64,000 nt of DNA from Raja brachyura (GCA_963514005.1 OY740827.1:3596001-3660000); one strand, 5' to 3'; counted from the stretch's first letter, positions 7,016 to 57,451 are shown. Notes: a model not told the origin generated them from the letters alone. Program-made: numbers and translations.

Positions 7016-7056
7016 GGGAAGGTTATGGGGAGAAGGCAGGAGAATGGGGTTAGGAG

Positions 7057-17201: not shown

Positions 17202-17567
17202 CAGTAACACTGAGCCGTGTTACAGGGTGGTAGTTGAAACGATTTCCCCCTCCAAAATCAACTCTGAAAAAATAAGGACCTGCATCTTGCAGCGTGATGT
17301 TGTCTATAACCAGGGAACAGTCGTTGTCTCTCAGGATTCCTGACAGCCGGGTCCGATGCTGAAACGTTGTTGATTCTAGACTGGAATTCCCGGAGTGGAA
17401 GGCCACAGAATCTTCTTTGTTCTTCTCACTGTTATACCAGATTCCAGTCCATGGTTTATTGTTCAGATTCGACGGGTACCTGTAGTGACACGGAATCCGT
17501 GCACACAAACCATTCTGCGCTGTCACATCTGGTGGAGTGTCCGCACTCCACTGTCCCGACACCACGG
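17202..17567 (-). CDS. Siglec-like gene A, V-set sialic-acid-binding domain exon
   Basis: ctcctcag|CC...G|gtaagt, 366 nt; QW..GLCARIPC.Y.YP..W..RTRLSG..DCSL.I..DAGPYFFR, i.e. Siglec cysteine pattern plus F-strand Arg. Confidence 0.92.
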
Positions 17568-17706
17568 CTGAGGAGAGAAGGAACAATCTTTAGCAGTGAA
17601 CACCCTGTCAGTTCACTGGACTCACTTTCCCCACCTTTTATCCTGCGCTGTGGACCTGGTGTGTACAGAGCGTAGAAGAGCGGCATGGTGGTGTAGGGGT
17701 AGAGCC

Positions 17707-18175
17707 TCCTCCTCACCGCCCCTCCCAGCGTGTCACTCCCTCCTCACCACCCCTCCCACAGCGTGTCACTCCCTCCTCACCGCCCCTCCCACAGCGTGTC
17801 ACTCCCTCCTCACCGCCCCTCCCACAGTGTGTCACTCCCTCCTCACCGCCCCTCCCAGTGTGTCACTCCCTCCTCACTGCCCCTCCCACAGTGTGTCACT
17901 CCCTCCTCACCGCCCCTCCCAGTGTGTCACTCCCTCCTCACCGCCCCTCCCACAGTGTGTCACTCCCTCCTCACCGCCCCTCCCAGTGTGTCACTCCTTC
18001 ACCGCCCCTCCTACAGTGTGTCACTCCCTCTTCACCGCCCCTCCCAGTGTGTCACTCCTTCACCGCCCCTCCCACAGTGTGTCACTGGCTCCTCATTGCC
18101 CCTCCCACAGTGCGTCACTCCCTCACACAGTGTATTATTGCCTCTTCAATGCCCCCCCACTGCGCGTCACTCCCA
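17707..18175. repeat. 29-31-bp C-rich minisatellite (cctcctcaccgcccctcccacagtgtgtcact), ~15 units
   Basis: Direct inspection; lies ~140 nt upstream of the V exon. Confidence 0.95.
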
Positions 18176-19059
18176 GGGACCAGTAGAGTGTCCCTTATAG
18201 CCAGGGTCCGGAGGGCAATCTGCACCAGTATATTCCATCTGCCACTTCTCTGTCCACTCTCCCAACCTGCCCAAGTCCTTCAGCAGAGTCCATGCTTTCT
18301 CTACACTATCTGCCCCTCCACCTATTTCCGTATCATCCGCAAACTTGACCACAAAGCCTTCAATCCCCTGGTCTAAATCATTAATATATAACGTGAAGAG
18401 TCGTGGTGTGTAGGAAGGAACTGCAGTAGCTGGTTTAAACTGAAGATTGACACAAAAATAGGGAGAAACTCAGCCGGACAGGCAGCATCTCTGGAGAGAA
18501 GGAATGGGTGACGTTTTGGCTCAAGACCCTTCTTCAGACTGAAAGTCACGGGAAAGGGCAACGGGAGATATAGACGGTGATGTAGAGAGACAGAGAACAA
18601 TGAATGAAAGATATGCATGAAAGTAATGATGATAAAGAAAACAAGTCATTGTTAGCTGATTGTTGGGTGAGAACGAGAATCTGGTGCGACTAGACTAAGG
18701 GAGCGATGGAGAGAGAGGGAATGCAGGGTTTACTTGAAGTGAGAGAAATCAATATTCATACCGCTGGGATGTAAGCTGCCCAAGCAAAATATGAGATCCT
18801 GTTCCTCCAATTTGCAGTTGGCCTCACTCTGACAGTGGAGGAGAACTAGGACAGAAAGATCAATGTGGGAATGGGAAGGGGAATTAAAGTGTTTGGCAAC
18901 CAGGAGATCAGGTAGGTCCAGGCGGACTGAGCGAAGGTGGTCAGCAAAACGATCGTTGCGGCCCCAGCACCGTCCCCTGCGGAACTCCGCTAGTCACTGG
19001 CACCCAACCAGTGAAAGCCTTCTCGCCCGTAAACACTTGTGAGTTGCTGCTGATGGTAC

Positions 19060-19099
19060 CTTGGAGAAGGGAGAGGAGGAAGCACGATCTCCCGATCAT
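19060..19099 (-). CDS. Siglec-like gene A, signal-peptide exon (whole exon 19060-19140 incl. 5' UTR)
   Basis: cttccag| acceptor at 19141; ATG..CAA G|gtacca encodes MIGRSCFLLSLLQ and splices in phase to (A)VVSG-QW; conserved in the paralog. Confidence 0.85.
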
Positions 19100-19582
19100 T
19101 GTCCGATCCCAGATATCCCGTCAGTCCCCGATCTCCCGGTCTGGAAGAGAAAGTGATTGCAGTAAAATTCTAGCGACCAATATACATTAAACGACATGGA
19201 TGCAATGCTAAGCTCTATAAGGTGCTGGTCAGGCCACATATGGGATAATGTGAGCAATTTTGAGCCCTGTATCTGATGAAGGATGTGTAGGCTCTGGATG
19301 GGTCTAGAGGAGGTTTACATGAATGAGTGGGTTTACATAGGATGAGCGTTTGATGGTACTGGGACTATACTCGCTGGAGTTTAGATGAATGAGGGGGGAC
19401 CTCAATGAAACTTGCCGAATAGTGAAAGGCTTGGATAGAGTGGATGTGGAGTGGTTATTTCCATAGCCTCAGAATTCTTTTAGGAAGGAAATGAGGAGGA
19501 ATTTCTTTAGTCAGAGGATGGTGAATCTGTGGAATTCTTTGCCACAGACGGCTGCGGAGGCCAATTCAAGCTTTCAAGGTCA

Positions 19583-20245
19583 GTTTATTGCCACATGTAC
19601 CAATTAAGGTACAGTGAAATTCGAATTACCAAATAAAAGCAACAAGAGACACAACTACATCAAAGTTAACATAAACATCCACCACAGTGAACTCCCCACG
19701 ATCCTCAATGTGACGGAAGGCAATAAAGTCCAAACTTCTTCCTCTTTTATTCTCCTGCGGTTGGGGCGATCGAACCATCTGCAGTCTGGGGGATTGAAGC
19801 TCCCGCAGCCGGCGGTGGAAGATCCCGCGTCAGGGCGATCGAAACCCCCCGCGTCAGGGCAATCGAAGCTCCCACGTTGGGGTGATCAAAGCTCCTGCGG
19901 TTTGGAGTTTCCCGAAGTCGGTCTCTAACCCGAGACCACAAGCTCCGTGTTGTTAAAGTTCGCAGGCACCCGGGGTGCAGCTCTCGAAGTCAGTCTCCAG
20001 CAAAGCCCACCAACTCCTCGATGGTGGACCGCAGTGCGGACGGAGATATGATACGGAAGAAAATTGTATCTCCATCGAGGTAAGAGATTAGAAAAAGTTT
20101 CCCCAACTCCCCCCCCCCCCCCCCCCACATAAAACAACCTAAAGAACACTAAAAACATACATTGAACACACACAGCCAGACAACAAAGAAGGAAGGGACA
20201 GACAGACTGTTGGTGAGGCAGCCATTGCTGGCGCCACCTGGTGGA
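19583..20245 (-). mobile_element. Unclassified GC-rich dispersed repeat (paralog 60188-60860; related copies 35640-36285 and 40070-40692 on +)
   Basis: Shared head and G-run/CpG-rich body across four loci, gacaataaa-type tail; no coding capacity recognised. Confidence 0.55.
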
Positions 20246-20482
20246 TATTGTTAAGGCAGAGATAGAAAGATTATGAATTAGTACGGGTGTCAGGGGTTAA
20301 GGGGAGAAGGCAGGAGAATGGGGTTAAGAGGGAGTGATAGATCAGCCATGATTGAATGGGGGAGTAGGTTTGATGGGCCAAATGGCCTAATTCTACTCCC
20401 ATCACTTATGACCTGATGAGCAATCTTGTTGCCTTCCTTTGGTTTTAAAAGCTTCGCGCTAATCTTTGCCAAGTAACAGGAT

Positions 20483-20772
20483 GGCGCACAGTGGCGCAGC
20501 GGTAGAGTTGCTGCCTCACAGCGCCAGAGACCCGACTTCGATCCTGACTACAGGTGCTGTCTGTACGGAGTTTGTACGTTCTCCCTGTGATCTGCGTGGA
20601 TTTTCTCCGGGATCTCTGCTTTCCTTCCACACTCCAAAGACGTACAGGTTTGTAGGTTAATTAGACTTCGGTAAAAAAAAATGTATTTGTCCGAAGTGTG
20701 TGTAGGATAACGTTGGTCGCAGGTCAGCATGGGCTGAAGGGCCTGTTTCTGCACAGTATCACTAAACTAAAC
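20483..20772 (+). mobile_element. tRNA-derived V-SINE-like element (paralog ~61094-61370; further copies ~13987, ~54040, ~62775, and 26390-26612 on -)
   Basis: A box tggcgcagcgg, B-box-like ttcgatcc, core ggagtttgtacgttctccc, LINE-like tail; consistent with the elasmobranch HE1/V-SINE type. Confidence 0.82.
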
Positions 20773-22869
20773 ACAGAACTTGTTTGTGAACTGGTGATCG
20801 CGGGTTGGCACGGACTCGATGGACTGAAGGGCCTGTTTCCGCGCTGCATCTCTAAACTAGAAAACTAAACTAAACTGGCATCACTGCTACTGTTCTGCCA
20901 TGTGGTTAAGTCCCACAAGGTGCCTGGTACATGAACTAGGGACGGTATCTGAGGAACAGTCGAGGGCTCTAAGCTGATCATTACTAAAGTAGAAGTAAGA
21001 GGCTATTCATACAGAGGTTGATGAGGGGTTGTGTGGGTTGTGGAACCAGCTGCCGGTGGAAGTAGTTGAGGCAAGTACAATAACAACATTTAATTTAGTT
21101 CAGTTAAGAGACACAGCGTGGAAACAGGCCCTTTGGCCCACCGAGTCCGTGTTGACCAACGATGACCCATTCACACTCTAGTTCTGTTTAGTTTGGCGAT
21201 ACAGCGTGGAAACAGGCCCTTCAGCCCACCGAGCCCATGCTGCCCATCGAGCACCCGTTCACACACTAATTCTATGTTTAGTTTGGCGATACAGCGTGGA
21301 AACAGGCCCTTCGGCACACCGAGTCCACGCTGACTATCGATCACCCATTCACACACGAGTTCTGTGTTTAGTTTAGGGATACAGCATGGAAACAGGCCCT
21401 TCAGCCCACCAAGTCCGTGCCCACCAGCGATCACCCGTTCACACACTAGTTCTCTCTTTAGTCAGAGGGTGGTGAATCTGTGGAATTATTTGCCACAGCA
21501 GGCTGTGGAGGGCTAGTCAGTGGATATTTTTAAGGCAGAGTAAAATAGATTCTTGATTAGTGCGGGTGTCAGGGGTTATGGGGAGAAGGCAGGAGAATGG
21601 TGTTAGGAGGGAGAGATAGATCAGCCATGATTGGGTAGCGGAGTAGAGCTGATGGGCCGAATGGCCTGATTCTGCTGCTATCACATGACTGTAAATATCA
21701 CCAACAACATACCCTGCACCAACTACATTGGAGCTGTGGTCAATAAGGCACACTAATGTTTCATCTTCCTCAAAAGATGAAGGAAGTTCTGCATTTCTCC
21801 AGTGACTCACACCAACGTCTCCACAGGAATTGTGAAAGAACACTGTTAGGTTGCAGCACGACATGGTTTGGGACCAGCTCTGTCCAAGACCACAAGAAAT
21901 CACTGAGGGCTTAGTTTAGTTTAGTTCAGAGATGCAGCGCTGAAACAGGCCCCCTCGGCCCACCGAGTCCATGCTGGCCATCGATCACCCGTTCACATAC
22001 TAGTTATATGTTTAGTTTTTGAGATACAATACAGACACAGGACCTTCAGTCCACCGAGTTTGCACCGACCAGCGATCACCCATTCACACATTAATTCTGT
22101 GTTTAGTTTAGAGATACAGCACGGAAACAGGCGCACCGAGTCCGTGCCGACCAGCGATCACCGTTCACACACTAGTTCTGAGTTTAGTTCAGAGATGCAG
22201 CGCGGAAACAGGTTCTTCGGCCCACCCAGTCCGTGCCGGCCAGCGATCCCCGCACACTAGCACTATCCTACACACACCAGGGACAATTTACAATTTTGCC
22301 AAGTCAATTAACCTGCAAACCAGCACATCTATGGAATGTGGGAGGAAACCAGAGAAATCGGTGCTGGCTCGAAGGGCCGAATGGCCTTCTCCTGCACCTA
22401 TTTTCTAGAACCCAAGCAGGTCAAGAGTCCAGATTCAAGAATGTTTTATTGTCAAATGTCCCAGATTACAGAATGAAATTCTTACTTGCAGCAGCACAAC
22501 AGAATATGTAAACGGGCAAACTCCATACAGACAAGCACCCAAAGTCAGGATCAACCAGGGCCTCTGGCGCTGTGAGGCAGCAATGCTACTGCTGCGCCAC
22601 CTAGCCGCCCCTAACATGTATATCGCCCAGTCCATCACACAAATCAGTCTCCCCATTCCACCCCCGAAGGGCATGTTAAAAAGCATTTTATCAGGATGCA
22701 TTGTAGCTTGGTTTGAGAACAGTTCCATCCACACAGCAACGGGCTCTTCGGCCCACCATGTCCATACCAGCCCTTTTTTGCCCATCGATCGGTATGGTTG
22801 TACAATTGCCATGTGTAAAGGGATACAGTGTTTGCATGCAACCCAGGTAAGTCGTACTATATAAGGTCA

Positions 22870-24220
22870 TAAGTGATGGGAGCAGAATTAGGTCATTCAG
22901 CCCATCAACTGTACTCTGCCATTTAATCATAGCTGATCTATCTCTTTCTCCTAACCCCATTTTCCTCCCTTCTCCCCATAACCACTGCTCCACGACTAAT
23001 CAAGAATCTATCTATCTCTGCCTTAATACATCCACTGACTTGGCCTCCACAGTCTTCTGTGGCAAAGCATCCACAGATTCACCACCCTCTGACTAAAGAT
23101 ATTCCTCCTCATCTCCTTCCTAAAAGAACGTCGTTTAATTCAGAGGCTATAACCTCTGGTCCAATACTCTCCCACTAGTGGAAACATCCTCTCCACATCC
23201 ACTCTATACAAGCCATTCACTATTCTGTACGTTTCAATGAGGTTCCCCCCTCATGATTCTAAACTCCATTGAGTACAGGACCAGTGCGTCAAATGCTCAT
23301 CACACGTTAACCCACTCGTTCCTGGGATCGTTCTTGTAAACCTCCTCTGGACCCTCTCCAGAGTCAGCACATCCTTCCTCAGATACGGGGCCCAAAATTG
23401 CTCACAATATTGAGTACAATATGGACTGAGAGTCAGGGGAGATGGAGACACAGAGATACCTTTCTGTCCTGGGCCTCCTCCACTGTCAGAATGAGGCCCC
23501 ATGCAAATTGGAGGAACAGCACCTCATATTTCACTTGGGCAGTTTACACCCCAGTGGTATGAATATTGACTTCTCTAACTTCAAGTAACCCTTGCTTTCC
23601 CTCTCCCAAGATGAGTTGAGTATAGGAGCAAAGAGGTCCTCCTGCAGTTGTATTGGGCCCTAGTGAGACCACACCTGCAGTATTGTGTGCAGTTTTGGTC
23701 TCCAAACTTGAGGAAGGACATTCTTGCTATTGAGGGAGTGCAGCATAGGTTCACAAGGTTAATTCCCGGGATGGCGGGACTGTCATATGTTGATAGATTG
23801 GAGTGGCTGGGCTTGTGTACTCTGGAATTTAGAAGGATCAGAGGGGATCTTATTGAAACAAATAAGATTATTAAGGGTTTGAACACGCTAGAGGCAGGAA
23901 ACATGTTCCCAATGTTGGGGGAGTCCTGAAGCAGGGGCCACAGTTTAAGAATAAGTGGTAAACCATTTAGAACAGTGATGAGGAAAAACATTCACACACA
24001 TAGTTGTGAGTCTGTGGAATTCACTACCTCAGAGGGCGGTGGAGGCTTGTTCTCTGGATGTTTTCAAGAGAGAGTTAGATAGAGCTCTTAGGGATAGCAG
24101 AGTTAAGGGATATGGAGAGAAGGCAGGAACGGGGTACTGATTGTGGATGATCAGCCATGATCACATTGGATGGTGGTGCTGGCTCGAAGGGCCGAATGGC
24201 CGACTCCAGCACCTATTGTC
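22870..24220. mobile_element. CR1 3' fragments in both orientations (22870-23410 minus; 23610-24220 plus)
   Basis: YCEQFWAPYLRKD / LVRPHLQYCVQFWSP ORF2 C-terminal peptides plus 3' UTR. Confidence 0.8.
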
Positions 24221-29518: not shown

Positions 29519-31749
29519 AGAAACATAGACATAGAAATTAGGTGCAGGAGTAGGCCATTCGGCCCTTCGAGCCTGCACCGCCATTCAATATGATCATGGC
29601 TGATCATCCAACTCAGTATCCTGTACCTGCCTTCTCTCCATACCCTCTGATCCCCTTAGCCACAAGGGCCACATCTAACTCCCTCTTAAATATAGCCAAT
29701 GAACTGGCCTCAACTACCCTCTGTGGCAGAGAGTTCCAGAGACCCACCACTCTCTGTGTGAAAAACGTCCTTCTCATCTCGGTCCTAAAGGATTTCCCCC
29801 TTATCCTTAAGCTGTGACCCCTTGTCCTGGACTTCCCCAAGACCGGGAACAATCTTCCTGCATCTAGCCTGTCCAACCCCTTAAGAATTTTGTAAGTTTC
29901 TATAAGATCGCCTCTCAATCTCCTAAATTCTAGAGAGTATAAACCCAGTCTATGCAGTCTTTGTTCATAAGACAGTCCTGACATCCCAGGAATCAGTCTG
30001 GTGAACCTTCGCTGCACTCCCTCTATGGCAATAATGTCGTTCCTCAGATTTGGAGACCAGAACTGTACGCAATACTCCAGGTGTGGTCTCACCAAGACCC
30101 TATACAATTGAAGTAGAACCTCCCTGCTCCTATACTCAAATCCTTTTGCTATGAAAGCTAACATACCATTCGCTTTCTTCACTGCCTGCTGCACCTGCAT
30201 GCCTACTTTCAATGACTGGTGTAACAGGACACCCAGGTCACGCTGCATCTCCCCTTTTCCTAATCGGCCTCCATTTAGATAATAGTCTGTTTTCCTATTT
30301 TTGCCACCAAAGTGGATAACCTCACATTTATCCACATTATACTGCATCTGCCAAACATTTGCCCACTCACCCAGCCTATCCAAGTCACCTTGCAGTCTCC
30401 TAGCATCCTCCTCACAGCTAACACTGCCCCCCAGCTTAGTGTCATCCGCAAACTTGGAGATATTGCCTTCAATTCCCTCATCCAGATCATTTATGTATAT
30501 TGTAAATAGCTGGGGTCCCAGCACTGAGCCTTGCGGTACCCCACTAGTCACTGCCTGCCATTGTGAAAACGACCCGTTTACTCCTACTCTTTGCTTCCTG
30601 TTTGCCAGCCAGTTCTCTATCCACGTCAATACTGAACTCCCAATGCCGTATGCTTTAAGTTTATATAATAATCTCTTATGTGGGACCTTGTCGAAAGCCT
30701 TCTGGAAGTCCAGATACACCACATCCACTGGTTCTCCCCTATCCACGCTACTAGTTACATCCTCGAAAAATTCCACAAGATTCGTCAGACATGATTTACC
30801 TTTCGTAAATCCATGCTGACTTTGTCCAATGATTTCACCACTTTCCAAATGTGCTGCTATCCCATCTTTAATAACTGACTCTAGCAGTTTCCCCACTACC
30901 GATGTTAGACTAACTGGTCTGTAATTCCCCGTTTTCTCTCTTCCCCCCCCTTCTTAAAAAGACGGGTTACGTTTGCTACCCGCCAATCCTCAGGAACTAC
31001 TCCAGAATCTAAAGAGTTTTGAAAGATTATCACTAATGCATCCACTATTTCCGGAGCTACTTCCTTAAGTACTCTGGGATGCAGCCTATCTGGCCCTGGG
31101 GATTTATCGGCCTTTAATCCATTCAATTTACCCAACACCACTTCCCGACTAACCTGGATTTCACTCAAGTCCTCCTTTGACCCGCGGTCCCCTGCTATTT
31201 CCGGCAGATTATTTATGTCTTCCTTAGTGAAGACGGAACCAAAGTAGTTATTCAATTGGTCCGCCATATCCTTGTTCCCCATGATCAACTCACCTGTTTC
31301 TGACTGCAAGGGACCTACATTTGTTTTAACTAATCTCTTTCTCTTCACATATCTATAAAAACTTTTGCAGTCAGTTTTTATGTTCCCTGCCAGTTTTCTT
31401 TCATAATCTATTTTTCCTTTCCTAATCAAGCCCTTTGTCCTCCTCTGCTGGTTTCTGAATTTCTCCCAGTCCTCTGGTATGCTGCTTTTTCTGGCTACTT
31501 TGTATGCATCATCCTTTGCTTTGATACTATCCCTGATTTCCCTTGTTATCCACGGATGCACTGCCTTCCCTGATGTATTCTTTTGCCAAACTGGGATGAA
31601 CAATTTTTGTAGTTCATCCATGCAGTCTTTAAATGTCTTCCATTGCGTATCCAAGTATTTAAATGTCTTCCGTTGCGTATCCAAATCTTTAAATGTCTTC
31701 CATTGCGTATCCAAGTCTTTAAATGTCTTCCATTGCGTATCCAATTGCG
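29519..31749 (-). mobile_element. Young 5'-truncated CR1 LINE, same family as 2298-7019, nested in the DIRS recombinase
   Basis: Near-identical to 2298-4420; tail agaaacatagacatagaaa; 4-bp TSD/microhomology TATT (29515-29518 / 31750-31753) restores ..AAA ISAA.. Confidence 0.93.
29613..30896 (-). CDS. CR1 ORF2 reverse transcriptase + C-terminal domain (uninterrupted 427-codon segment)
   Basis: YLDFQKAFDKVPH, GVPQGSVLGP, FADDTK, LVRPHLEYCVQFWSP. The upstream part (30905-31744) is separated only by a frameshift at a G-run. Confidence 0.88.
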   Translation of the reverse strand: MGKLLESVIKDGIAAHLESGEIIGQSQHGFTKGKSCLTNLVEFFEDVTSSVDRGEPVDVVYLDFQKAFDKVPHKRLLYKLKAYGIGSSVLTWIENWLANRKQRVGVNGSFSQWQAVTSGVPQGSVLGPQLFTIYINDLDEGIEGNISKFADDTKLGGSVSCEEDARRLQGDLDRLGEWANVWQMQYNVDKCEVIHFGGKNRKTDYYLNGGRLGKGEMQRDLGVLLHQSLKVGMQVQQAVKKANGMLAFIAKGFEYRSREVLLQLYRVLVRPHLEYCVQFWSPNLRNDIIAIEGVQRRFTRLIPGMSGLSYEQRLHRLGLYSLEFRRLRGDLIETYKILKGLDRLDAGRLFPVLGKSRTRGHSLRIRGKSFRTEMRRTFFTQRVVGLWNSLPQRVVEASSLAIFKRELDVALVAKGIRGYGEKAGTGY

Positions 31750-31752
31750 TAT
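31624..31752. repeat. Four tandem 30-bp repeats at the CR1 5' truncation junction
   Basis: agtctttaaatgtcttccattgcgtatcca x4; single copy in the full-length element (~4392-4421). Confidence 0.93.
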
Positions 31753-40919: not shown

Positions 40920-41038
40920 TCATTTGTTGCGACAACGCGCTGCCCAGAAGATTGCGGTGATGATGACGGAGGCAACAAGGATGACGGCAAGAACGATCAT
41001 GGCCGCGACGCATTTCCAAGTCCTTTCCGAGCCATGTA
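40920..41038 (-). CDS. Siglec-like gene B, transmembrane/terminal coding exon
   Basis: ctctctccacccctcag|TA phase 1; (L)HGSERTWKCVAAMIVLAVILVASVIITAIFWAARCRNK*, a ~25-aa hydrophobic helix with basic stop-transfer residues, then TGA (40920-40922). Confidence 0.82.
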
Positions 41039-44090: not shown

Positions 44091-44811
44091 TTCCTAAACG
44101 CAAACTATTGGATCTGCATTAGCCACCACTATGCGTTCGAGACACCCTCCACTTTTGAAACTTTCTCCATCTGGTCTTAAAGTCACACCCACTAATCATT
44201 GACACATCCACCCTGACTGTCTCCATTATTTCTGCCTCTCATAATTTTATATACTTCTATCCATTCTTCCCGAAACACCTGTCTCAGCGGAAAAAACAAT
44301 CCAAGTTTGTCCAGCCTCTCCTTTATGCTAAGACTCTCTAATCCGTGCTGCATTCTGATAGAAGCCTTCACAGCCTCCGCATCCTTCCAGTAATTATGTC
44401 ATCAGGACCGCACCCAATACTTCAAATAACCTTGTCTAGTATTGAACATTCATTTCTCTAGCTGCATGTAACCCTTGCTTTCCCGTCTCTCTCCATCCCC
44501 TCCCACCTTCCCAGTTCTCCGACCAGTCTGACTGTCCTTGAATACATTTTATCTCTTTGCTTTATTGTCACCTTCTCCTAGCTAACAATGATCTATTCCA
44601 CATTTTCCTTGATCTCCATCCCCTTGTCTCCTTTTCACACCTTGTATTCCCCTCTCCCAAACTCAATTTGCAGAAGGGTCTCGATTCAATAGGTCACCCA
44701 TTCCTTCTATCCAGAGATGCTGCCTGTCACATGAGTTACTCCAGCACTTTGTGTCTAACCTTACCTAATCTTCTTCATCTTACAAGAGGAGAGTGTGGGA
44801 GAGAGGGTGTG

Positions 44812-44886
<75 letters not shown>

Positions 44887-47800
44887 ATGTTATTTTGTGT
44901 GTGTGAGTGTGCGTGTGAATGTGTGTGAGTGTGCGTGTGAATGTGTGTGTGTGCTTGTTAATTTGTGTGTGCGTGTTAATGTGTGTGTAAGTGCGTGTTA
45001 ATGTGTGTGTGGATGTGTGTAAGAGTGCATGTGAATGTGTGTGTGGGTGTGCATGCTAATGTGTATGAGTGTGCGTGTTAATGCGTGTCTATGTGTGTGC
45101 GTGTTAATGTGTATAAGTGTGCGAGATAGAGTGGGAAACAGGGCCTTCGGCCCACCGAGTCCGCACCGATCACCAATCACCCGTGCACACGCTTGCTCTG
45201 TTTAGTTTAGAGAGACAGCGATGAAACAGGCCCTTCTGTCCACCCAGTCTGCACCACCACTGATCACGCATTCACATTATTTTTATCTTTAGTTTAGAGA
45301 GACAGCGATGAAACAGGCCCTTCTGTCCACCCAGTCTGCACCACCACTGATCACGCATTCACATTATTTTTATCTTTAGTTTAGAGAGACAGCGCGGAAA
45401 CAGGCCCTTCGACCCACCGTGTCCACGCCGACCATCGATCACCCGTTCACATGATTTAAACTTTAGTTTCGAGATACAGCATGGAAAAAGGACATGCAGC
45501 CCACCGTGCCCACCGACCATCGATCACCCGTTCACACAATAGTTATTTGTTTAGTTAGAGAGACAGCGCGGAAACAGGACATTCGGCCCACCGTGCCCAC
45601 CGACCATCGATCACCCGTTCACACAATAGTTATTTGTTTAGTTAGAGAGACAGCGCGGAAACAGGACATTCGGCCCACCGTGTCCACGCCGACCATCGAT
45701 CACCCGTTCACACGATTTCTATGTTGTTTAGAAAGACAGCGCGGTAAAAGGACCTGCGGCCCACCAAGTCCACGTTGACCACGATCACCCCTCACATCAG
45801 CACCCCTACACACACTGGGGACAATTTACAATTATACAAAGCCTATTAACCAACAAGCCTGTACGTCTTTGGATTGTTGGAGGAAATGAGAATGAGAGGA
45901 CATGGGTTTAAGGTGAGGGGGGAATATTTAATAGGGACCTGAGGGGTAATTTTTTCACACAAGGGATGTGGGTGTATGGAACGAGTTGCCAGAGGAGGTA
46001 GCTAAGCCAGGTACTATCGCAACGTTTCTGAAACATTTAGACAGGTGCATGGATAGGACAGGGGTGTAGGGGTTTAGAGAGATATGGAAGATAGACACAA
46101 AATGCTGGAGTAACTCAGCGGAACAGGCAGCCTCTCTGGAGAGAACAAATGGGTGACATTTTGGATAGGGGCCAAACAAAGGCAGGTGAGACTAGTGTAG
46201 ATGGGACATGTTGGCAGGTTTGGGCTAGTTGGGCCGAAGGGCCTGCTTCCATGCTGTAAGACTCTATGACTCTGAGTTCCTCCAGCACTTTGTGTTTTGT
46301 ACGTGTATCCAAAGCAGTGTCTCATCAGTGAAGGACAGATGAGCTTGCCAGCGGACCATTGATTTGATTAGTGTAGGAAGGAACTGCAGCTCCTGGAGGG
46401 ATATGGATCACGTGCAGGCAGAGGCCTGGATAGAGTGGTTGTGCAGAGGATGTTTCCACCAGTGGGAGAGTCTAGGACCAGTTGTCACAGTCTTGGAATT
46501 AAAGGATGTTTCTTTAGGAAGAGGATAACTTTTTTTCATCAACAGCAAAGCGACATCGAGACGCAGTCAGCAGCAGAATGCAACAAGAGACGCAACAAGA
46601 AAGAACTGAATTGAATAAATCTCATCTTTAACGTTCAAATTGTTGTTGTATTTTAAGAGTTATTCACATTTTAAGCATTAATATATTCATTTTCCACTTG
46701 CCATGCCCGTCAGCTGTGTCTGTGCAGTAATACCTGTGTACTCTATGTCACAATGGGAACCCATTGGGCGGGAATAGTTGTGCCGCCGAAGAGCAGCTAA
46801 GAATGGATGGGAGGGTGGAGTGAGTGCATAGGGAGGGTGGGTGTGGGGGTGGAAGCGCAAGGGATGGAGTGGGGGGGGGGATGAGGGGGTATCAGGAGGG
46901 TCAGAACAGGAACCCATCAGCCGTGCCTGCGTAGTTGGGGGCTATGGGTAAGTGGTGGAATATTGCGTTGGGGACCAGGCCTCCCGTGTCAGAAAGGGAC
47001 CCAATGGGTCCCACCTAGTCTAGTCGTTTTATATATTTATATCAGGTCTCTCCTCAGCCTTTGAACTGGGTGATAAATCTGTGGAATTCATTGCCACAGA
47101 TCACAGTGGAGGCCAAGTCAGTGGATATATTTAAGGCAGAGATAGATAGATTTTTGATTAGTACGGGTGTCAGAGGTTATGGGGAGAAGGCAGGAGCATG
47201 GGGTTAGGAGGGAGAGATAAATCATCCATGATTGAATGGGCCGAATGGCCTAATTCTGACTTGATGGGCCGAATGGCCTAATTCTGCTCCTGTCACCTAT
47301 GACCTTATGAACTCCATGGAAAACAATCCAAATCTTTCCAACCTCTTCTTTAGTTTCAATTAGTTTAGAGATACAGCGCGGAAATGGGCACTTCGGCCCA
47401 CCTTGTCCACTCCGACCAGTGATCCCCGCACACGAACACTATCCCACACACACGAGGGACAATTTGCAAATATAACAAGTCAATTCACCTACAAACCTGT
47501 ACGATTTGAGTGTGGCAGGAAACCGGAGCACCTGGAGAAAACCCACGCAGGTCATGAGGTGAATTTACAAACTCCCGACAGACAAGCACCCGTAGTCAGG
47601 ATCGAACCCGGCTCTCTGGTGCTGTGAGGCAGAACTCTACCGTTGAACCACTGTGCCCCCCTTAAAACTCCTTATTGCTAATACTCTCTAATCCAGGCAG
47701 CATTCTGCACCCTGGCCACATCCTTCCCGTAATGTGGTGGCCAGAACTGCACACAATGCTTCAAATAACTTTATTTAATCTTCCACATCTTAGAAGTGGA

Positions 47801-48444
47801 GAGATGAAATATAGGAAAGATGTTGTCAAGCAGGAAAGGGGACAGAGAAGTTTTACGAGGATGTGGCCAGAACTCGAGGCCCTGAGCTTTAGGGAGAGGT
47901 TGAGCAGGCTGGGACTCTATTCCTTGGAGCGCTGGAGGATGAGGGGTGATCTTACAGAGGTGTATCAAATCATGAGAGGAATAGATCGGGTAGTCGCACC
48001 GAGTGTCTTGCACGGAGTAGGTGAATCGAGAACCAGAGGACTTTAGTTCAAGGTGAAGGGTAAAAGATTAAATAGGAATCTAGGGGGTGACTTTTTCATA
48101 CAAAGGGTAGTTGTTGTTTGGAACGAGCTGCCAGAGGAGCTAGTTGAGGCAGCGTTTAAGAAACAGACAGGTACATGGATAGGACAGGTTTGGAGGGATA
48201 AGGGCCAAAACGTGGGCAGGTGGGACTAATGTAGCTGGGACATGTAGACCTTTGAAAGCAAGTTGAGCCAAAGTGCCTGTTTCCACGTTACATAACTCTA
48301 AGACTCTATGGCTGACTCTATGGCTCAATGAGAAGGCAGGAGAATGGGGTTAGGAGGGAAAAATAGATCAGCCATGACCTTATGACTCCTATCACTTATG
48401 ACCTTATGACAATTTGAGGGACATGACAGTGTGTGTCTACTCAC

Positions 48445-48726
48445 ATTCGACAGTGAGGGTCACATCCCTCTCTGCTGTCCCGTGTTCATTCTCCGCCACA
48501 CACTGATAGACCCCAGCATCCTGCCGTGTCAGCTGAGGGAACTCCATCCACAGCTCGTTGCTGGAATGTGTTGTGTTCAGCGTGACACCGAGATGTCTCC
48601 ATGTCAGGTTACATGCTGGGAAACTCTGGACGGAGCAGAGGATCGCTGCAGAGTTTCCTTCCTTTACACTGACCCGGGAACTGTTCGCGCCATTGTGGGA
48701 AGTGATTGAGAGATTCCGCGGAGCAT
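48445..48726 (-). CDS. Siglec-like gene B, Ig domain 4 exon
   Basis: 282 nt, AG/GT intact, open; 3 aa differences from the gene A exon. Confidence 0.88.
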
Positions 48727-51700
48727 CTAAATACAAACAAAGGTTTCAACGTGTTCACACGGCAGAATTCCACGTGTCAACCTGGACAGTACGGAGAGAA
48801 AAGATGAAGTACAGATGTGACCAGTCTGCAGAAGGGTCTCACCCATTCCTTCTCTCCAGAGATGCTGCCTCACCCGCTGAGTATCTCCAGCTCTTTGTGT
48901 CTACCCTTGGTTTAAACCAGCACCTGCAGTTCCTTCCTCCATATTTTGTCTGCTCCACTGCAAAATCTCCTCAAGATATGTCTACTTTGAAAAGGTTCTC
49001 CTCTTTCCGACGAGAGTTGGAGTCATAGGGTGATAGTGTGGAAACGGGCCCTTCGGCCTAATTTTCCCACACCGGCCAACATGTCCCAGATATACTAGTG
49101 CCACCCATATCCCTCCAAACCTGTCCTATCCATGTACCAAGGCCAGTATGCCAAAAGCCTTTTTGACCACCCGATCTTCCTGCGACTCGATCTTCAAGGA
49201 ACCTTGCAGCTGCACTCCTAGACCCCACTGCTCTTCATCACTCCCCAGAGACCTACCATTAACTGTGTAGGTCCTGCTCTTGTTAGAGAACCCAAAATCC
49301 AACATCTCACACTTCTTGTTATTAAACTCCACCAACCATTCCTCAGCTCATCTATCCAATCGATCAAGATCCTGCTGCAATCTTTCACAATGCAGTTCTG
49401 CCTCATCCTCTCTCCCTGCTCCCCCTCTGTGATGCCACATGTTCTCTGACCTTATATTCATTGTTCTTTATCTCTCGACATCATCGTCTGTATCCATCGT
49501 TTACCTTATCCCTAACCAGTCTGAAGAAGGACCTCGACCCGAAACGTCGCCCGTTCCTTCTCTCCAGAGATGCTGCCTGTCCCGCTGAGTTAGTTCAGCT
49601 TTGTTGTGTCTATCTTCAGCACGAATGTAAGCTGGCCAATAATGTAAAAGAGGACAGCAAGAGTTTCTACGGATATATAAAGAGTTAAAAAAGAGGCAAG
49701 AGGGGATGTTGGGCCGCGGGAGAATGATGCAGGAGAAATCAAGAAATGGAATAGGAATTGAATAACCTTTTTGCATCAGTCCTCACCATGGAGGACACCA
49801 GCAGTGTGCCTGCAATCTTAGAGAGTCAGGGGTGGAAGTTAGTGGAGTGACGATTACTAAGGAGAAGGTGCTGGGAAAACTGAAAGGTCTGAGAGTGGAT
49901 AAGTCACCTGGACTGGATGGACTGCACCCCAGGGTTCTGAAGGAGGTGGCCTCGGAGATTGTGGAGGCATTAGTTGTGATATTTCAAGAATCACTAGAGT
50001 TAGGAGTGGTTCATGAAGATTGGAAATTTGCAAATATCGTCCCGCTGTACAAGAAAAGAGTGAAGCAGAAGAGCGGAAACTATAGGACGGTTAGCCTGCT
50101 ACGATGGTTGGTAAGATTTTTAGTCAATTGTAAAGGAAGAGGTTACACAGTGCTTAGATGTTCACGATAAGATGGGCCGAAGTCAGCATGGTTTTGTGAT
50201 CTTGCCTGATGAATCTGTTGTAGTTCTTTGTGGAAGCTGTGGATTAAAGAAAGCAGTGAAGAAGGCAAATGGCATGTTGGCCTTCCTAGCGAGAGGATTT
50301 GAGAAAAGGAGCAAGGTTGTGCTATTGCAGTTGAACAGGGCCCTGGTGAGACCGCACCTGGAGTATTGTGTGCCGTTTTGGTCACCTAATTTGAGGAAGG
50401 CCATTCATGCTATTGTGGGAGGGCAGCATAGGTACACGAGGTTAATTCCCAGGATTGCGGTACTGACATATGGTGAAATAATGGATCGACTGGGCTTGTA
50501 TTCACTGGAATTTAGAAGGATGAGAGAGGATCTTAAAGAAGCATATACAATTCTCAAGGATTTGGACAGGCTAGATGCAGGAAAAATGTTCTTGATGTTG
50601 GGGGAGTCCAGAACCAGGGCGCACTGTTTAACAATAAGGGGTAGGCCATATAGGGGGCTGAGATGAGGAAATACTTCTTTACCCAGAGAGTTGTGAATCT
50701 GTGGAATTCTCTGGCACAGAAGGCAGCGGAGGCCAATTCACTGGATGTTTTCAAGAGAGAGATAGGTATAGCTCTTCGGGCTAACGGAATCAAGGGAAAT
50801 GGGGAGAAAACAGGAATGGGGTACTAATTTTGGATTATCAACCATGATAATTTTGAATGGTGGTGCAGGTTGGAAGGGCCGAATGGCCTACTCCTGCACC
50901 TATTTTCTACCATTTCTTTAAATAGATTTTCAGAATGTCTTGAATAAGGTGCCGCACGTCAGGCTGCTAGGGCAGATGATAACCTATGGTATTAAAGGGA
51001 AGATACTAGCATGGATAGCGGATTGGCTGGATTTGCAATAAAGATTTGCAATAAAATGAGCTTTTTCATGGTGGCTACCAGCAACTAGTGAAGTTCCTCA
51101 AGGGTCGGTGCTGGGGCCGTCTCTCTTCATGTTGTATATTAATGATTTGGATAAGGGGATTGAAGGCGTTGTGGCCAGGTTTGCAGATGATACTGAGGTA
51201 GGAAGCGTAGAGAAAGCAAGGACTCTGCTGAAGGACTTGGACAGGTTGGGAGAGTGGGCAAAGAAGTAGCGGATGAAATTCATTATTGCAAAGTGTTGAG
51301 TCATGCATTTTGGTAATAAGAGTAAGGTGTAGAGTATTTTCTAAATGGAGAGAGAATCCAGAAATCGGAGATGCAAAGGGACTTGGGAATGCTGGTGCAG
51401 GAATCCCAAAAAGTTAGTTTGCAATTTGAATCGGAAGTAAGGAAGGCAAATTCAATGCTAGCGTTTATATCAAGAGTGCTAGAATACACAAACAGGGATG
51501 TAATGCTGAGGCCCCAGAAGGTGCTGGTCAGGCCGCATTTGGAATATTGTGAGCAAATTTGGGCCCCATATCTGAGGAAGGATGTGCTGGCTCTGGAGAG
51601 GGTCCAGAGGAGGTTTACAAGAATTATTCCAGGAATGAGGGGATAGCATATGATGAGCGCTTGACAGCACTGGACCTGTACTCGCTGGAATTTAGATGGT

Positions 51701-52168
51701 TGAGGTGGGGGGGGGGGCTCATTGAAATTTACATAATAATTAAAGGCACGTGGATGTTGAAAGGTTGTTTCAACTGGTGAGAGAGTCTAGCACCATAGCT
51801 TCTGAAATAAATGCCCCTCTTTTAGAAATTAGGTGAGAAGGAGCTTCTTTAGTCAGAGGGCAGTTAATCTGTGGAACTCATTGCCACAGAGGGCTGTGGA
51901 GGCCAAGTCATTGGATATTTTTAAGGCAGAGATAAACAAGTTCTTGATTAGAACAAGTGTCAAGAGTTATGGGGAGAAGGCAGGAAAATGGTATTAGGAG
52001 GCAGAGAGCCATGATTGCATTGCGGAGTAGACTCGATGGGCCGAATGGCCTAATTCTATTCCTATAACTTATGATCTTCTAAACATGAACCACCTGTTTG
52101 AAGTCTAAAGGCAATCCTATATCACTTTCTCATTGGAACAAGATACCATATAAACATTCATGATAGAC

Positions 52169-52560
52169 ACAAAGTGCTGGAGTAACTCAGCGGGTCGGGC
52201 AGCATGACTGGAGAACGTGGACAGGTACAAAGTGCTGGAGTAACTCAGCGGGTCGGGCAGCATGACTGGAGAACGTGGACAGGTACAAAGTGCTGGAGTA
52301 CCTCAGCGGATCAGGCAGCATGACTGGAGAATGTGGACAGGTACAAGTGCTGGAGTAACTCAGCGGATCAGGCAGCATCACTGGAGAACGTGGACAGGTA
52401 CAAAGTGCTGGAGTAACTCAGCGGGTCAGGCAGCATCACTGGAGAACGTGGACAGTTACAAAGTGCTGGAGTAACTCAGCGGGTCAGGCAGCATCACTGG
52501 AGAACGTGGACAGGTACAAAGTGCTGGAGTAACTCAGCGGATCAGGCAGCATCTCTGGAA
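52169..52560. repeat. 58-bp tandem array (~7 units) derived from a dispersed-repeat segment
   Basis: aaagtgctggagtaactcagcgggtcgggcagcatgactggagaacgtggacaggtac at 52171, 52229, 52287...; one unit at the paralogous site ~12475. Confidence 0.92.
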
Positions 52561-54585
52561 AAAAGGAATAGGTGGCGTTTCGCGTCAAGACCCTCCTTCA
52601 GACTGAGAGTCGGAGAGCGGGAAATATGAGATATCGACGTCACAAATGAAAGATATGCAAAAGCAACGATGATCAATAAAGATGTCGAGCCAACAATGGT
52701 CCATTGTTGGCTCTAGGGTAGGTGATAACGAGTTTTACAGGAAATGAAACTCAAGAGGACAACAGTAAATAAACAACCCTTGTCACCTACCCTTGTTCTC
52801 CAGGATTGGAGGCATGAGCTACAGGGAGATGTTGGGACAGGCTGGGACTCTATTCCTTGGAGGGTAGGCGGATGAGGGGTGATCTAATAGAGATGATCAA
52901 AATTATTGCGAAGAATTGATCGGGTAGACGTACAAAGTCTCTTGCCCAGAGTAGGGGAATCGAGGACCAGAGGGCTTAGACTTAAGAGGAGAGGAGATTT
53001 AATGGAACCTGAGGGGTAACATTTTTCCACACAAAGGGTGGTGGGTGTATGGAACAAGCTGCCGGAGGAGGTAGGTGAGGCTGGAGGGATATAGGCCAAA
53101 CGCAGGCATGTGGGACTAGTGTAGATGGGGCATGTTGGCTGGTTGACTCTATCTGCACCTCACGCTGCCTTGGCAAGGCAGGCAGCATAATCAAGAACGA
53201 GTCACTCCCCAGCCACTCCCTCTTCTCCCCTCTCCCATTGGGCAAGAGGTACAGAAGTGTGAAAACGCACACCTCCAGATTCAGGGACAGTTTCTTCCCA
53301 GCTGTTATCAGCCAACTGAACCATCCTGCCACAACCAGAGCGCAGTCCTGAATTACTATTGTGCTATCTTTGATGGGACTTTACTGGATTTTTCTTGCAC
53401 TAAACGCGATTCCCTTTTCTTGTCTGTGTACACAGTGGGTGACACTATTGTAATCAAGTAGACACAAAAAGCTGGAGTAACTTAGCGGGACAGGCAGCAT
53501 CTCTGGAGATAAGGAATGGGTGACATTTTGGTTCGAGACCTTCTTCAGACTATAGGGAGAGGTTGAGCACGCTAGGTTTAAGATGAGAGGGGAGAGATTT
53601 AATAGATCCTGAGGGGTAAATTTTTTTCATGTAGTGGTTGGTACATGGAACGGAGCTGCCGGAGGAGGGAGTTGAGGCTGAGACCATTGCGACGTTTAAA
53701 AAATAGTTGAACAGGTAACATGGATAAGACTTGTTTGGATGGATATGGGCCGAAGTAGGGCAGGTGGGACTTAGTGGGCAGGTGGGGCTCGTTGGCCGGT
53801 GTGGGCAAGTTGTACCAAGGGGCCTGTTTCCACGCTGTACAACTCAATGACTCCAAAGATGTTGCCTGACCCATTGAGTTTCTCCAGCACTTTGTTTTTA
53901 AGCAACGTGAGGAGTGACGATACATAAAGGGAGGCATTGAGGGTTTCTGGGTAGAAAGCCCAATATGATCCAACAATGTCAGGCAGAGGTCAGACAGGCT
54001 ACATACAGGTAGGGAACACAAAAGATTGTAGATGTGGGCGGCATGGTGGCGCAGTGGGTAGAGCTGCTGTCTCACAGTGCCAGGGACCCGGGTTCCATCC
54101 TGACCACCGGTGCCTGTCCGTACGGAGTTTGCAGGTTCTCCCCGTGACCTGCGTGGGGTTTCTCAGAGATCTTGAGGATGTGTGTGTGTTTGAGTGAGCG
54201 CGTGAGAGAGAGAGCGTGTGGTTGTGCGATTGTATGTGAGCGAATGTGTGTGTGCGTGTGTGCGCGTGTGTGTGCGTGCGTGCGTGCGTGTGTGTGTGCG
54301 TGGGAGGGTGAATGTGTGTGCCTGATAGATGTATGTGAGAGGGAGAACGCGTGTGTGTGTGTGATGGTTTGTGAGAGAATGTGTGTGTGTTTGAGTGAGC
54401 GTGAGTGTGTGTGAGAGTGAGTGTGTGTGAGAGATGGTGTTCATGTGTGCGACAGAGAGAATGTGTGTGTGTGAGAGAAGGAGAGTGAGTGTGTGAGTGT
54501 GTAAGCGATGAATTCCAGTGTCTCTCATTGTCGAATAATAAATCTGCCTTTATAGACAGTCACATGACAGTGTGTGTCTACTCAC

Positions 54586-54867
54586 ATTCTACAGTGAGGG
54601 TCACATCCCTCTCTGCTGTCCCGTGTACATTCTACCCCACACACTGATAGACCCCGGTGTCCTGCCGTGCCATCTGAGGGAACTCCATCCACAGCTCGTT
54701 GCTGGAATGTGTTGTGTTCAGCGTGACACTGAGATGTCTCCACGTCAGATTAGATACTGGGAAACTCTGGACGGAGCAGAGGATCGCTGCAGAGTTCCCT
54801 TCCTTTATACTGACCCAGGAATTGTTCACGTTGTTGGGGGAAGTGATTGAGAGATTCTGGGGGGCGT
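54586..54867 (-). pseudogene. Siglec-like gene B, Ig domain 3 exon with in-frame nonsense codon
   Basis: 282 nt, splice sites intact; YQCVG-TAG (54632-54634) where gene A has GAG. Confidence 0.85.
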
Positions 54868-55818
54868 CTGCAAACAGATAAAATTCAGCAACCTGTTTTA
54901 CGGCACTTTGGGTGATCCTTGGATTGTAAAAGACTTTAATCTTTAGACTTTAGAGATGCAGCTCGGAAACAGGCCCTTTGGCCCACCCAGCCTGCGCCGA
55001 CCATGGATCACCCGTTCACACGCTAGTCCTAAGGTTAGTTTAGAGATACAGTGTGGAGACAGACCAATTTGGCCCACCGAGTCTGCGCCGACTTCTATGT
55101 TTAAGGAAATGAGAAATATCGTCAATGGTGTAGAGAGATATAGAACAAAGAATGAAAGATATGCAAACTATTTACGATGATAAAGGAAACAGGCCATTGT
55201 TAGCTGTTTGTTGGGTGAGAACGAGAAGCTGGTGCGACTTGGGTGGGAGAGGGATGGAGAGAGAGAGGGAATGCCGGGGCTACCTGAAGTTAGAAAAACC
55301 AATATTCATAGCAATATTCATACCACCACGTAAGCTGCCCAAGCAAAGTATGAGATGCTGATCCTCCAATTTGTGTTTAGCCTCACTCTGACAATGGAGG
55401 AGCCCTAGAAAAGTCAGTGTGGGAATGCGAAGGAGAATTAAAGTGTTTAGCAGCCGGGAGATCAGGTAAGTCCTACATCTCTCTACATCATCGTCTATAT
55501 CTCTCGTTTCCCTTTCCTGTGACTTTCGCTCTGAAGAACCCTCTCAACCCGAAACTTCACCCATTCCTTCTCTCCAGAGATGCTGCCTGTCCCGTGGAGT
55601 CACTCCAGCTTTTGGTGTTGATTTGATTAGTATGGATGTCAGAGGTTACGGGCAGAAGGCAGAAGAAAGGGGTTAGGAGAGATAGATCAGCCATTAATGA
55701 ATGGCAGAGTGAACTTGATGGGCCGAATGGCCTAATTCTGCTCATATCGCCTATGACCTTATGTACCAGCACTGCTGGTTATTGCTGTTCCTGCACAATA
55801 AACGATGTCCATACTTAC

Positions 55819-56112
55819 ATTGCACAGTCATTGTGAGGATCTGCTCCGATGAGACAGTTGGGTATCTGACTCTGCAGGTGAGGTTTTGCCCGTGATGTTT
55901 GAGCGCTGGGGTCAGGGACAGAACAGAAGTGTATGTTAGAGTGTCTCCCCGCTGAGTTACGCTGTGTGAGGCTGACGTTGGTTCATCAGCGGGGGTGACC
56001 CAGGTTAAGGTGGGAGCCGTTCCATCACACGTGGTGTTGAAGATGCAGGTCACGGTCACAGGCTGACCTGCCACCATTTCATCAGGGAATATCGTGGGTT
56101 TATTTGTGAAAT
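55819..56112 (-). CDS. Siglec-like gene B, Ig domain 2 exon
   Basis: 294 nt, phase 1-1, open; 3 aa differences from gene A. Confidence 0.9.
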
Positions 56113-57085
56113 CTAACACACACAGAAACAGATACTATTAGTTAAATATCACTGGATACATCGGTTCACATTGTAATCCCAGTACCACATGAGGAAGGAT
56201 GTTTTTACATGGTATAGAAGTGTGGAAACACACACCTCCAGATTATCAAGGACCAGTCTCACCCCCGGTCACTCCCTCTGCTCCCCTCTTCCACCGGGCA
56301 AGAGGTACAGAAGTGTGAAAACGCACACCTCCAGATTCAGGGACAGTTTCTTCCCAGCTGTTATCAGGCCGCTGAACCATCCAACCACAACCAGAGAGCC
56401 ATCCTGAACTATCTACCTCATTGGTGACCTTCAGACTATCCCTGATCAGACTATGCTGTCTTAACCTTGCACTAAACGTTATTCCCTTATCATGCAGCTG
56501 TACACTGTAAACGGCTCGATTGTAATCATGTATTGTCTTTCCGCTGACTGGATAGCACGCAACAAAAGCTTTGCACTGTACCTCGGGACACGTGACAATA
56601 AAATTAACTAACTAAACTAAACTAGGATGATCCCTGAACAAGGAGGTACAATGGTCAGGGGAGGTTGAAAAGGTTGGGAATCAGGAATGTTATGATGACC
56701 TGTGATCGGGAAGATGGGGACAGAGTTCTCCACTAAGGGCAGTAAGGATAAGACAGTCATTGTTTAGTTTAGTTCAGGCTGCGTGAAGTGTAGATGGAGT
56801 CGATATTAGGAGCATATATGGGCAATGAAAACCTGGCAATAACACTGCAAAAACTGGAGGTGTCACGATGATCCAGAAATGAACCAGAAGGATCCTGATG
56901 CTGTGGTGTGTGTGTGAATAGGGAACGTGTACCGTCCAAAGTCCGATCAAGGATAGTCCGAGGGTCACCAGTGAGGTTGATGGTAGTTCAGCACTGCTCT
57001 CTGGTTGTGGTAGGATGGTTCAGTTGCCTGATAACTGCTGGGAAGAAACTGTTGAGTGAATGAGTGAATTACACAGAGCACTTAC

Positions 57086-57451
57086 CAGTAACACGGAGCT
57101 GAGTTACAGTGGGGTAGCTGTAATTATTTCGCCCTCCAAATTTAACTCTGAAAAAATAAAGACCTGCATCTTGCTGCGTGACGTTGTCTATAACCAGGGA
57201 ACAGTCGTTGTCCCTCAGGACTCCTGACAGCCGGGTCCGATGCTGAAACGTTGTTGATTCTAGACTGGAATTCCCGGAGTGGAAGGCTACTGAAACTTTG
57301 TTGTTTGTGTCCTTGTTAAACCAGATTCCAGTCCGTGGTTTATTGTTCAGATGCGACGGGTACCTGTAGCAACACGGAATCCGTGCACACAAACCATTCT
57401 TCGCTGTCACATCTCGTGGATTGTCCCCACTCCACTGTCCCGACATCACGG
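57086..57451 (-). CDS. Siglec-like gene B, V-set domain exon
   Basis: 366 nt, open; GLCARIPCC..DCSL..DAGLYFFR, essential Arg retained. Confidence 0.92.

Follow-up and report, generated by a model that had tools for sequence, protein, structure and literature searches.

Divergence at the predicted glycan-binding face between two otherwise similar tandem Siglec-like genes of the skate Raja brachyura

We analysed a stretch of 64,000 nucleotides from the skate Raja brachyura (GCA_963514005.1, OY740827.1:3596001-3660000), referred to below as the window. It holds a tandem segmental duplication of about 17 kb with mosaic divergence and, as delineated by self-BLAST, one minus-strand MAG/Siglec-like gene in each copy. 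The V-set exons of the two genes (V1 in copy 1, V2 in copy 2) differ at 37 of 366 nucleotides (10.1%), against 0 of 147 in the aligned sequence upstream and 15 of 595 downstream, and the amino-acid replacements concentrate in those segments that, by homology, form the sialoglycan-binding face. The best reading of this pattern, to which we give an even chance of being right, is divergent selection on the binding face amid gene conversion between the copies.

As counted in the initial annotation, which had been made from the bare sequence, the V exons are separated by 28 amino-acid changes among 122 residues and by four purely synonymous codons (54, 55, 80 and 117); its counts for domain 2 (three amino-acid and three synonymous changes) and for the amino-acid changes of domain 4 (three, to which three synonymous ones are added here) were likewise reproduced, and every peptide it quotes was located on the minus strand where it had been placed. 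The V changes cluster where it had placed them, in codons 47-53 (C-C' loop), 104-120 (F strand, F-G loop and G strand) and 9-13 (A/A' strands), and the central stretch is indeed identical, over codons 56-77 (66 nt; p=0.015 for a run of that length under shuffling). Distributed over codon positions 1, 2 and 3 the nucleotide differences number 13, 15 and 9, which is the pattern of unconstrained or positively selected sequence, not of constrained sequence; the ratio of transitions to transversions (16:21 in V vs 253:202 in non-coding sequence) appears uninformative. The shift of charge, described as acidic to basic, does end basic (net +7, isoelectric point 9.6) but starts from neutral (net 0, isoelectric point 7.1).

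The neighbouring domains had been called almost frozen. Domain 3, which the annotation passed over, is not, with changes at 16 of its 93 residues. For domains 2 and 4, with three changed residues each, the word is a poor fit as well: the surrounding introns are equally alike (2-4% divergence), so that these exons are no more conserved than their own introns and look young or recently homogenised rather than constrained. Non-coding divergence between the copies averages 5.3% in blocks ranging from 1 to 13%, with the blocks that contain domains 2 and 4 at 2-4%. Its index of dispersion (3.65, vs at most 1.79 in 2000 shuffles) makes the divergence mosaic beyond chance, and the longest identical run extends over 212 nt (p=0.006). 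The mosaic of similarity is tract-like and takes in the introns, as expected under concerted evolution; the V exon falls outside the homogenised tract, at 10% vs 0-2.5% in its flanks.

To assign the V domain, database searches were run exon by exon. A PDB sequence search with V1 returned MAG as best match (3.7e-16), followed by sialoadhesin, Siglec-15, Siglec-10 and CD33. An AlphaFold2 model of V1, computed from a 50-sequence family alignment, reached a predicted local distance difference test (pLDDT) value of 89.7; in Foldseek its top match was sialoadhesin (template modelling score 0.87, 1.7 Å), MAG, Siglec-7 and CD33 superposed too, and the top 44 matches listed for the model were all Siglecs. 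Pfam assigned an N-terminal V-set domain followed by C2-set_2 and I-set domains on the next three exons, which is the Siglec domain order. Strands were assigned to the model by DSSP (A 8-10, A' 14-17, B 23-30, C 40-45, C' 55-58, D 73-75, E 86-88, F 97-105, G 109-121). In Siglec V-set domains, an arginine of strand F pairs with the carboxylate of sialic acid, aromatic residues of the A and G strands pack on its N-acetyl and glycerol groups, and the cysteines form an intrasheet B-E disulfide, with an extra cysteine linking to domain 2. In the skate proteins, Arg102, within the motif YFFRV, is the counterpart of MAG R118 and sialoadhesin R97 in the alignment; both copies have it, as do at least 90% of the 50 family members. 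By alignment only, Trp7, kept in both copies, corresponds to sialoadhesin W2 and MAG W22, and F111 (tyrosine in V2) to MAG Y127 and sialoadhesin W106. The cysteines C22, C27 and C84 occur in both copies, are invariant or nearly so in the family, and match the Siglec cysteine pattern at the level of sequence. By all sequence and fold criteria tested, the V domain is thus a Siglec-type lectin domain, and glycan binding is predicted.

The variable sites were placed by the DSSP strands of the model and through alignment with MAG and sialoadhesin rather than by distances, and the binding face was defined from these strands together with the published MAG contacts (PMC5150538). In MAG, the ligand is contacted by R118, Y65, residue 126, Y127 and T128, and the mutants R118A, Y127A and T128A lose binding (PMC5150538). 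MAG R118, Y65, Q126, Y127 and T128 align with R102, K49, R110, F111 and N112 of V1, and the changes from V1 to V2 at these contact homologues are K49T, R110N, F111Y and N112S; a further one, D104K, lies two residues past the essential Arg102. Of the 34 residues that make up the C-C' loop, F strand, F-G loop and G strand, 16 are changed, whereas the other 88 residues of the domain include 12 changes (odds ratio 5.6, p=2e-4). The claim that the variable sites map to the binding face is therefore upheld, by homology rather than by distances. Two features gained by V2 were recorded besides: an N-Y-S glycosylation sequon (N110-Y-S112, 57123-57131) that arises through R110N and N112S on G-strand residues homologous to MAG contacts, and a fourth cysteine, H28C (57368-57370), adjoining the canonical Cys27.

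Rates of nonsynonymous (dN) and synonymous (dS) substitution and their ratio omega were obtained for the one gene pair with the Nei-Gojobori method (NG86) and with a pairwise GY94 codon model under maximum likelihood. For V, dN is 0.124 and dS 0.061, giving an omega of 2.0 (NG86) or 2.3 (GY94). The other domains lie below one by both methods: domain 2 with dN 0.014, dS 0.042 and omega 0.34 (NG86) or 0.45 (GY94), domain 4 with dN 0.014, dS 0.046 and omega 0.31 or 0.43, and domain 3 with dN 0.074, dS 0.138 and omega 0.54 or 0.76. With domains 2 and 4 pooled, which was done only for rate statistics, the ratio of replacement to synonymous changes is 32:5 in V vs 6:6 in the pooled domains (p=0.016). 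Replacement sites in V are also more diverged than the introns on either side (p=3e-9) and than non-coding sequence as a whole (p=7e-5). The elevated omega of V is significant only against such external neutral references.

Both genes are, as far as can be judged from sequence, members of an elasmobranch paired-receptor family. Their nearest proteins come from the skates Amblyraja radiata, Leucoraja erinacea and Rhinoraja longicauda; none of the database proteins is identical to the window genes. Relatives are predicted in elasmobranchs as 'MAG-like' or 'Siglec-12/13-like' proteins, among them L. erinacea XP_055521810.1 (P0160) and A. radiata XP_032868245.1 (P0159), with per-domain identities of 75-92%, and P0160 has the same architecture (V, three Ig domains and a transmembrane segment ending CCRNK). 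The best database match shifts from domain to domain, being P0159 for V, P0162 for domain 2, and P0164 and P0160 for domain 4. Family members carry tails of activating type (tailless, with a charged transmembrane segment), tails with an immunoreceptor tyrosine-based inhibitory motif (ITIM; P0153, P0168), or tails resembling the corresponding activation motif (ITAM-like; P0172, P0173, P0176). The leader of copy 1, MPLFYALYTP, is unusual and recurs in A. radiata P0008 and P0152, while most family members, the closest V relative P0159 included, begin MIGRSFFLLSLLQ; leader and V thus have different nearest relatives.

The 28 differing V sites were polarised at the protein level on 27 skate homologues, by which 11 are derived in V2 and five in V1, and at the remaining 12 each of the two states is common among family members. 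They coincide with the variable sites of the family (p=4e-5). Within the trio of V1, V2 and P0159, private changes number 9 in V1 (K49 and K51 of the C-C' loop among them), 16 in V2 and 9 in P0159, with at most two synapomorphies of V1 and V2. On the V alignment, the approximately unbiased (AU) test, applied to groups chosen after the trees had been seen, rejected the sister pair of domain 2 (p=0.0015), and on the domain-2 alignment it rejected that of V (p=0.018). The ratio of V to domain-2 distance, read off the two trees, is about 10 for the window pair and about 2.5-20 for other pairs, so that the contrast between V and domain 2 is a habit of the family and not peculiar to this pair. That the whole V exon is an old block was considered and rejected, as its 66-nt centre is identical although it belongs to a stretch (C'-D) that is hypervariable in the family (P=0.001 for zero differences at 10% divergence).

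Domain 3 and domain 4 are related by an internal exon duplication at about 91% identity (14818-15123 vs 8727-9032 in copy 1, 54542-54847 vs 48423-48728 in copy 2). The two domain 3 exons are 24 nt apart and each is 26-28 nt from domain 4, with 11 derived changes per copy; domain 3 is relaxed in both copies. Its block is also the diverged one at silent sites, with flanking introns at 8-13%. In copy 2, domain 3 carries an in-frame stop (GAG to TAG) together with two more unique changes (CVAENEH to CVG-stop-NVH), and since the splice sites of this exon are intact, the stop would enter the transcript. Contigs from public sequencing runs, matched at 85% likeness and used for spot checks of single letters, read GAG at this site in X1, X2 and X11, and one contig of X16 keeps the letter of the window. 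Skipping of domain 3 would keep the frame and yield a three-Ig architecture as in P0157, P0163 and P0167.

From these data we infer the following course of events. Gene conversion between the copies would keep most of the unit of about 17 kb, introns too, 96-99% alike; the exception is two V segments (A/A' strands, B-C and C-C' loops, F and G strands) that are about 13% different, mostly through replacements. Divergent selection on the sialoglycan-binding face would either drive these replacements or remove the conversion tracts that erase the difference. The two receptors, both of which keep the essential arginine, would then differ in their C-C' loops, G-strand contacts and surface charge, and perhaps in glycan specificity. 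The copies may have exchanged some motifs with further paralogues, and constraint on copy 2 may have been lost recently; both this relaxation and micro-conversion from the further paralogues probably add to the divergence of V.

Several observations weigh against selection as the cause. The strong diversifying selection claimed in the initial annotation survives as a point estimate (omega 2.0-2.3) but is borderline in significance for the pair of V1 and V2 taken alone (likelihood-ratio statistic 3.26, p=0.07; Fisher p=0.15). V carries five synonymous changes on 86 sites, about three times the density of its flanks (15 on 742; p=0.047). The annotation had itself held that a dS raised as much as dN would speak against selection, and in the binding-face codons this is partly what is seen: dS is 0.15 and dN 0.29 in these codons, vs 0.03 and 0.07 elsewhere (three and two synonymous changes, respectively), so that both rates rise together on the face, omega is about 2 in either partition, and only the level of divergence differs. 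Such a joint rise is expected if small tracts carry a separate history, and it leads to a neutral alternative, in which the V segments were imported by short tracts of exon-limited conversion from further paralogues in the cluster, or are old pieces not yet erased, and the excess of replacements is standing V-lineage diversity in the family, not selection on this pair. The strongly mosaic divergence of the duplication, which contains a block of the old class at domain 3, fits this alternative, as do synonymous changes that adjoin the replacement clusters (codons 54, 55 and 117, and a silent step in codon 49) and a GA>TG change 13-14 nt inside the intron, just beyond the 3' cluster. So do the 12 sites at which both states are common, and the rare combination S112/P114/T115 ('YSYPT'), found otherwise only in the transcript-derived P0154 of another V subclade. 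In the V tree, V1, V2 and P0159 meet as a trio of unresolved order; in the domain-2 tree, the two copies are joined as a clade with support 100/97 on a long stem, and V and domain-2 genealogies are incongruent family-wide. Against neutral import stand the V2 states G9, K18, C28, K47, V53, L98 and N110, which occur in 0 of 27 skate homologues and hence have no visible donor lineage. Moreover, the divergence ends within about 15 nt of both exon edges and the introns differ by 0-2.5%, unlike at domain 3; the dS of V (0.061) differs neither from that of domains 2 and 4 (0.043, p=0.75) nor from the non-coding mean; and an omega of at least 1 over structural strands would still need selection or decay. 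We therefore consider the neutral mosaic somewhat unlikely, though it is the most serious of the alternatives.

Decay may contribute as well, as copy 2 may be dying. If it were a pseudogene or null allele, the excess divergence of V would mostly be drift of an unconstrained V2. This would account for the in-frame TAG in domain 3 between intact splice sites, for the 16 lineage-specific changes in V2 vs 9 in V1, and for replacements at near-invariant or conserved sites (Q18K, H28C, P98L), which leave an unpaired extra Cys28, along with the gain of an N-glycosylation sequon at the triad of G-strand contacts; in humans, moreover, activating-type Siglecs commonly have null alleles (PMC6288428). Drift, however, cannot exceed the neutral rate, and the dN of V (12%) is 2-5 times higher than local neutral divergence (2-5%). 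The V1 of the apparently intact copy has nine derived changes of its own, K49 and K51 among them, and V2 is free of stops and frameshifts and keeps its splice sites, Arg102, Trp7 and the three canonical cysteines. Domain 3 is relaxed in both copies, and its skipping would keep the frame. That decay of copy 2 is the chief cause is distinctly improbable. An assembly artefact, with the copies being haplotypes or collapsed or mis-joined paralogues, would be conceivable for a single assembly to which public runs add low-coverage contigs, none of them spanning the whole stretch. It was rejected on the 5.3% divergence with many indels, a 5.2 kb long interspersed nuclear element (LINE) present in one copy only, differing minisatellite counts, about 24 kb of distinct sequence between the copies, and a 145-nt contig of X1 that matches copy 2 exactly over V2 (57323-57467), and we deem it very improbable. 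Divergent selection on the binding face amid conversion accordingly remains our preferred reading.

The positions of all exons are given in Table 1. The duplication was traced in self-BLAST blocks (420-2297, 7522-10543, 10570-12521, 12474-14378, 15459-18124 and 18226-20859) that match 45297-61453 at 83-97%. All Ig exons are of phase 1-1. The intervening sequence of about 24 kb includes the transmembrane exon of copy 2, whose protein ends directly after the membrane (...FWAARCRNK-stop) and has a lysine at the outer edge of the transmembrane segment (WKCVAAM...); the transmembrane exon and tail of copy 1 lie outside the window. A short tail lacking an ITIM, together with a basic transmembrane residue, marks the activating, DAP12-associating Siglecs, to which copy 2 may belong. 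Besides V1 and V2, no further V-like exons were found in the window, and plus-strand matches to 'RTRLSG' at 7919 and 47603 were dismissed as repeat-derived open reading frames.

Table 1. Positions of the duplicated units, exons and variable V segments in the window
Feature	Position	Strand	Remarks
Duplication copy 1	~1-20859	-	split by 5.2 kb LINE insertion, 2298-7521
Duplication copy 2	~44742-61453	-	global alignment to copy 1
Leader exon, copy 1	17656-17686	-	MPLFYALYTP, phase 1; read from sequence
Leader exon, copy 2	57540-57567	-	MPLYALYTP, one codon fewer; read from sequence
V-set exon, copy 1 (V1)	17202-17567	-	AG/GT flanks; Pfam V-set 2e-12
V-set exon, copy 2 (V2)	57086-57451	-	Pfam V-set 3e-12, Ig_CD22 1.3e-6
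Domain 2 exon, copy 1	15933-16226	-	Pfam C2-set_2 6e-10
Domain 2 exon, copy 2	55819-56112	-	97% amino-acid identity vs copy 1
Domain 3 exon, copy 1	14840-15121	-	Pfam I-set 3e-11; internal duplicate of domain 4
Domain 3 exon, copy 2	54586-54867	-	in-frame TAG at 54632-54634
Domain 4 exon, copy 1	8749-9030	-	Pfam I-set 7.5e-13
Domain 4 exon, copy 2	48445-48726	-	
Tailless transmembrane exon, copy 2	40920-41038	-	in-frame reading; tblastn match to L. erinacea P0160 C-terminus
C-C' loop cluster of V1, codons 47-53	17408-17428 (within 17288-17428, codons 47-93 in part)	-	aligns to MAG CC' loop, residues 63-70
V1 codons 103-120 (F strand past Arg102, F-G loop, G strand)	17209-17262	-	

The window is rich in repeats, with CR1/L2-type reverse-transcriptase reading frames of the shark and ray kind. 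The LINE of copy 1 retains long intact reverse-transcriptase and endonuclease reading frames and shares 97% identity with a further element (29529-31653) located between the two genes, suggesting that it retrotransposed recently. Immediately upstream of each leader exon sits a 33-bp minisatellite (unit CCTCCTCACCGCCCCTCCCACAGTGTGTCACTC, plus strand; 17706-18124 and 57589-58300), with 22 units in copy 2 and, as estimated from array length, about 13 in copy 1. A long, imperfect CA/CT-rich low-complexity array with 'THTHSL'-type reading frames (13650-14813 and 54002-54559) occupies the intron below domain 3 and is several hundred bases longer in copy 1 than in copy 2.

That the sugar-binding domain of Siglecs evolves fast is a textbook example of host-pathogen and host-sialome conflict, to our knowledge reported from mammals alone; no paper on the present family turned up in a full-text search for Siglecs in elasmobranchs. 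The skate pattern is ordinary and expected for such a gene family, and its statistical support, from one pair, is modest. If the preferred reading is true, cartilaginous fishes have independently expanded MAG/sialoadhesin-like Siglecs that behave alike, with V lineages that outlive species and receptor bodies that conversion keeps alike. V1 and V2 would then be a natural experiment on Siglec specificity, in which scaffold and arginine are shared and C-C' loops and G-strand contacts differ. A broader generalisation, by which conversion and selection act in the reverse manner to that in human paired Siglecs, conversion homogenising everything and selection shielding only the V face, with long-lived trans-species V 'specificity lineages' on interchangeable bodies, is tentative and in our judgement rather doubtful; if true, such lineages would resemble those of MHC or KIR, and an arms race of Siglecs with pathogens or with the sialome would be placed at the base of the jawed vertebrates.

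Among known systems, MAG (Siglec-4) and sialoadhesin (Siglec-1) are the nearest in structure (template modelling score 0.87-0.88, root-mean-square deviation 1.7-2.0 Å), with counterparts for R118/R97, the A-strand tryptophan and the G-strand aromatic residue. The identity of the skate V domain to them is, however, 30-33%, and the WxxW C-mannosylation motif of MAG is absent (WSAD in the skate). The skate gene, furthermore, has four Ig domains and a tailless transmembrane segment and belongs to a fast-evolving multigene family, whereas MAG and sialoadhesin are conserved single genes. In primate CD33-related Siglecs, the V-set domain (Ig1) evolves faster than Ig2 (Sonnenburg 2004, Angata 2004 and Altheide 2006, as summarised in PMC6288428). 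As in these, divergence in the skate pair is far greater in the V domain than in the C2-set domain next to it, the changes lie near the binding site, and the arginine is kept. Unlike these, the skate comparison concerns tandem paralogues within one genome and not orthologues, its V domains are nearest to MAG and sialoadhesin, and its introns too are little diverged, which points to homogenisation rather than constraint in the other domains.

The paired receptors SIGLEC5/14 and SIGLEC11/16 undergo concerted evolution by gene conversion (PMC6288428, PMC13358205). The skate genes share with them the neighbouring position, the tract-like mosaic of similarity that includes introns, and mixed tail types in the family. 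In the human pairs, the V-set domain and ligand specificity are held in common by conversion and it is the tails that differ; in the skate pair, the V face differs and the rest of the ectodomain is alike. The skate pair is thus of the same kind as the primate V-set case, in a cartilaginous fish, with one inversion, namely the exclusion of the V face from homogenisation.

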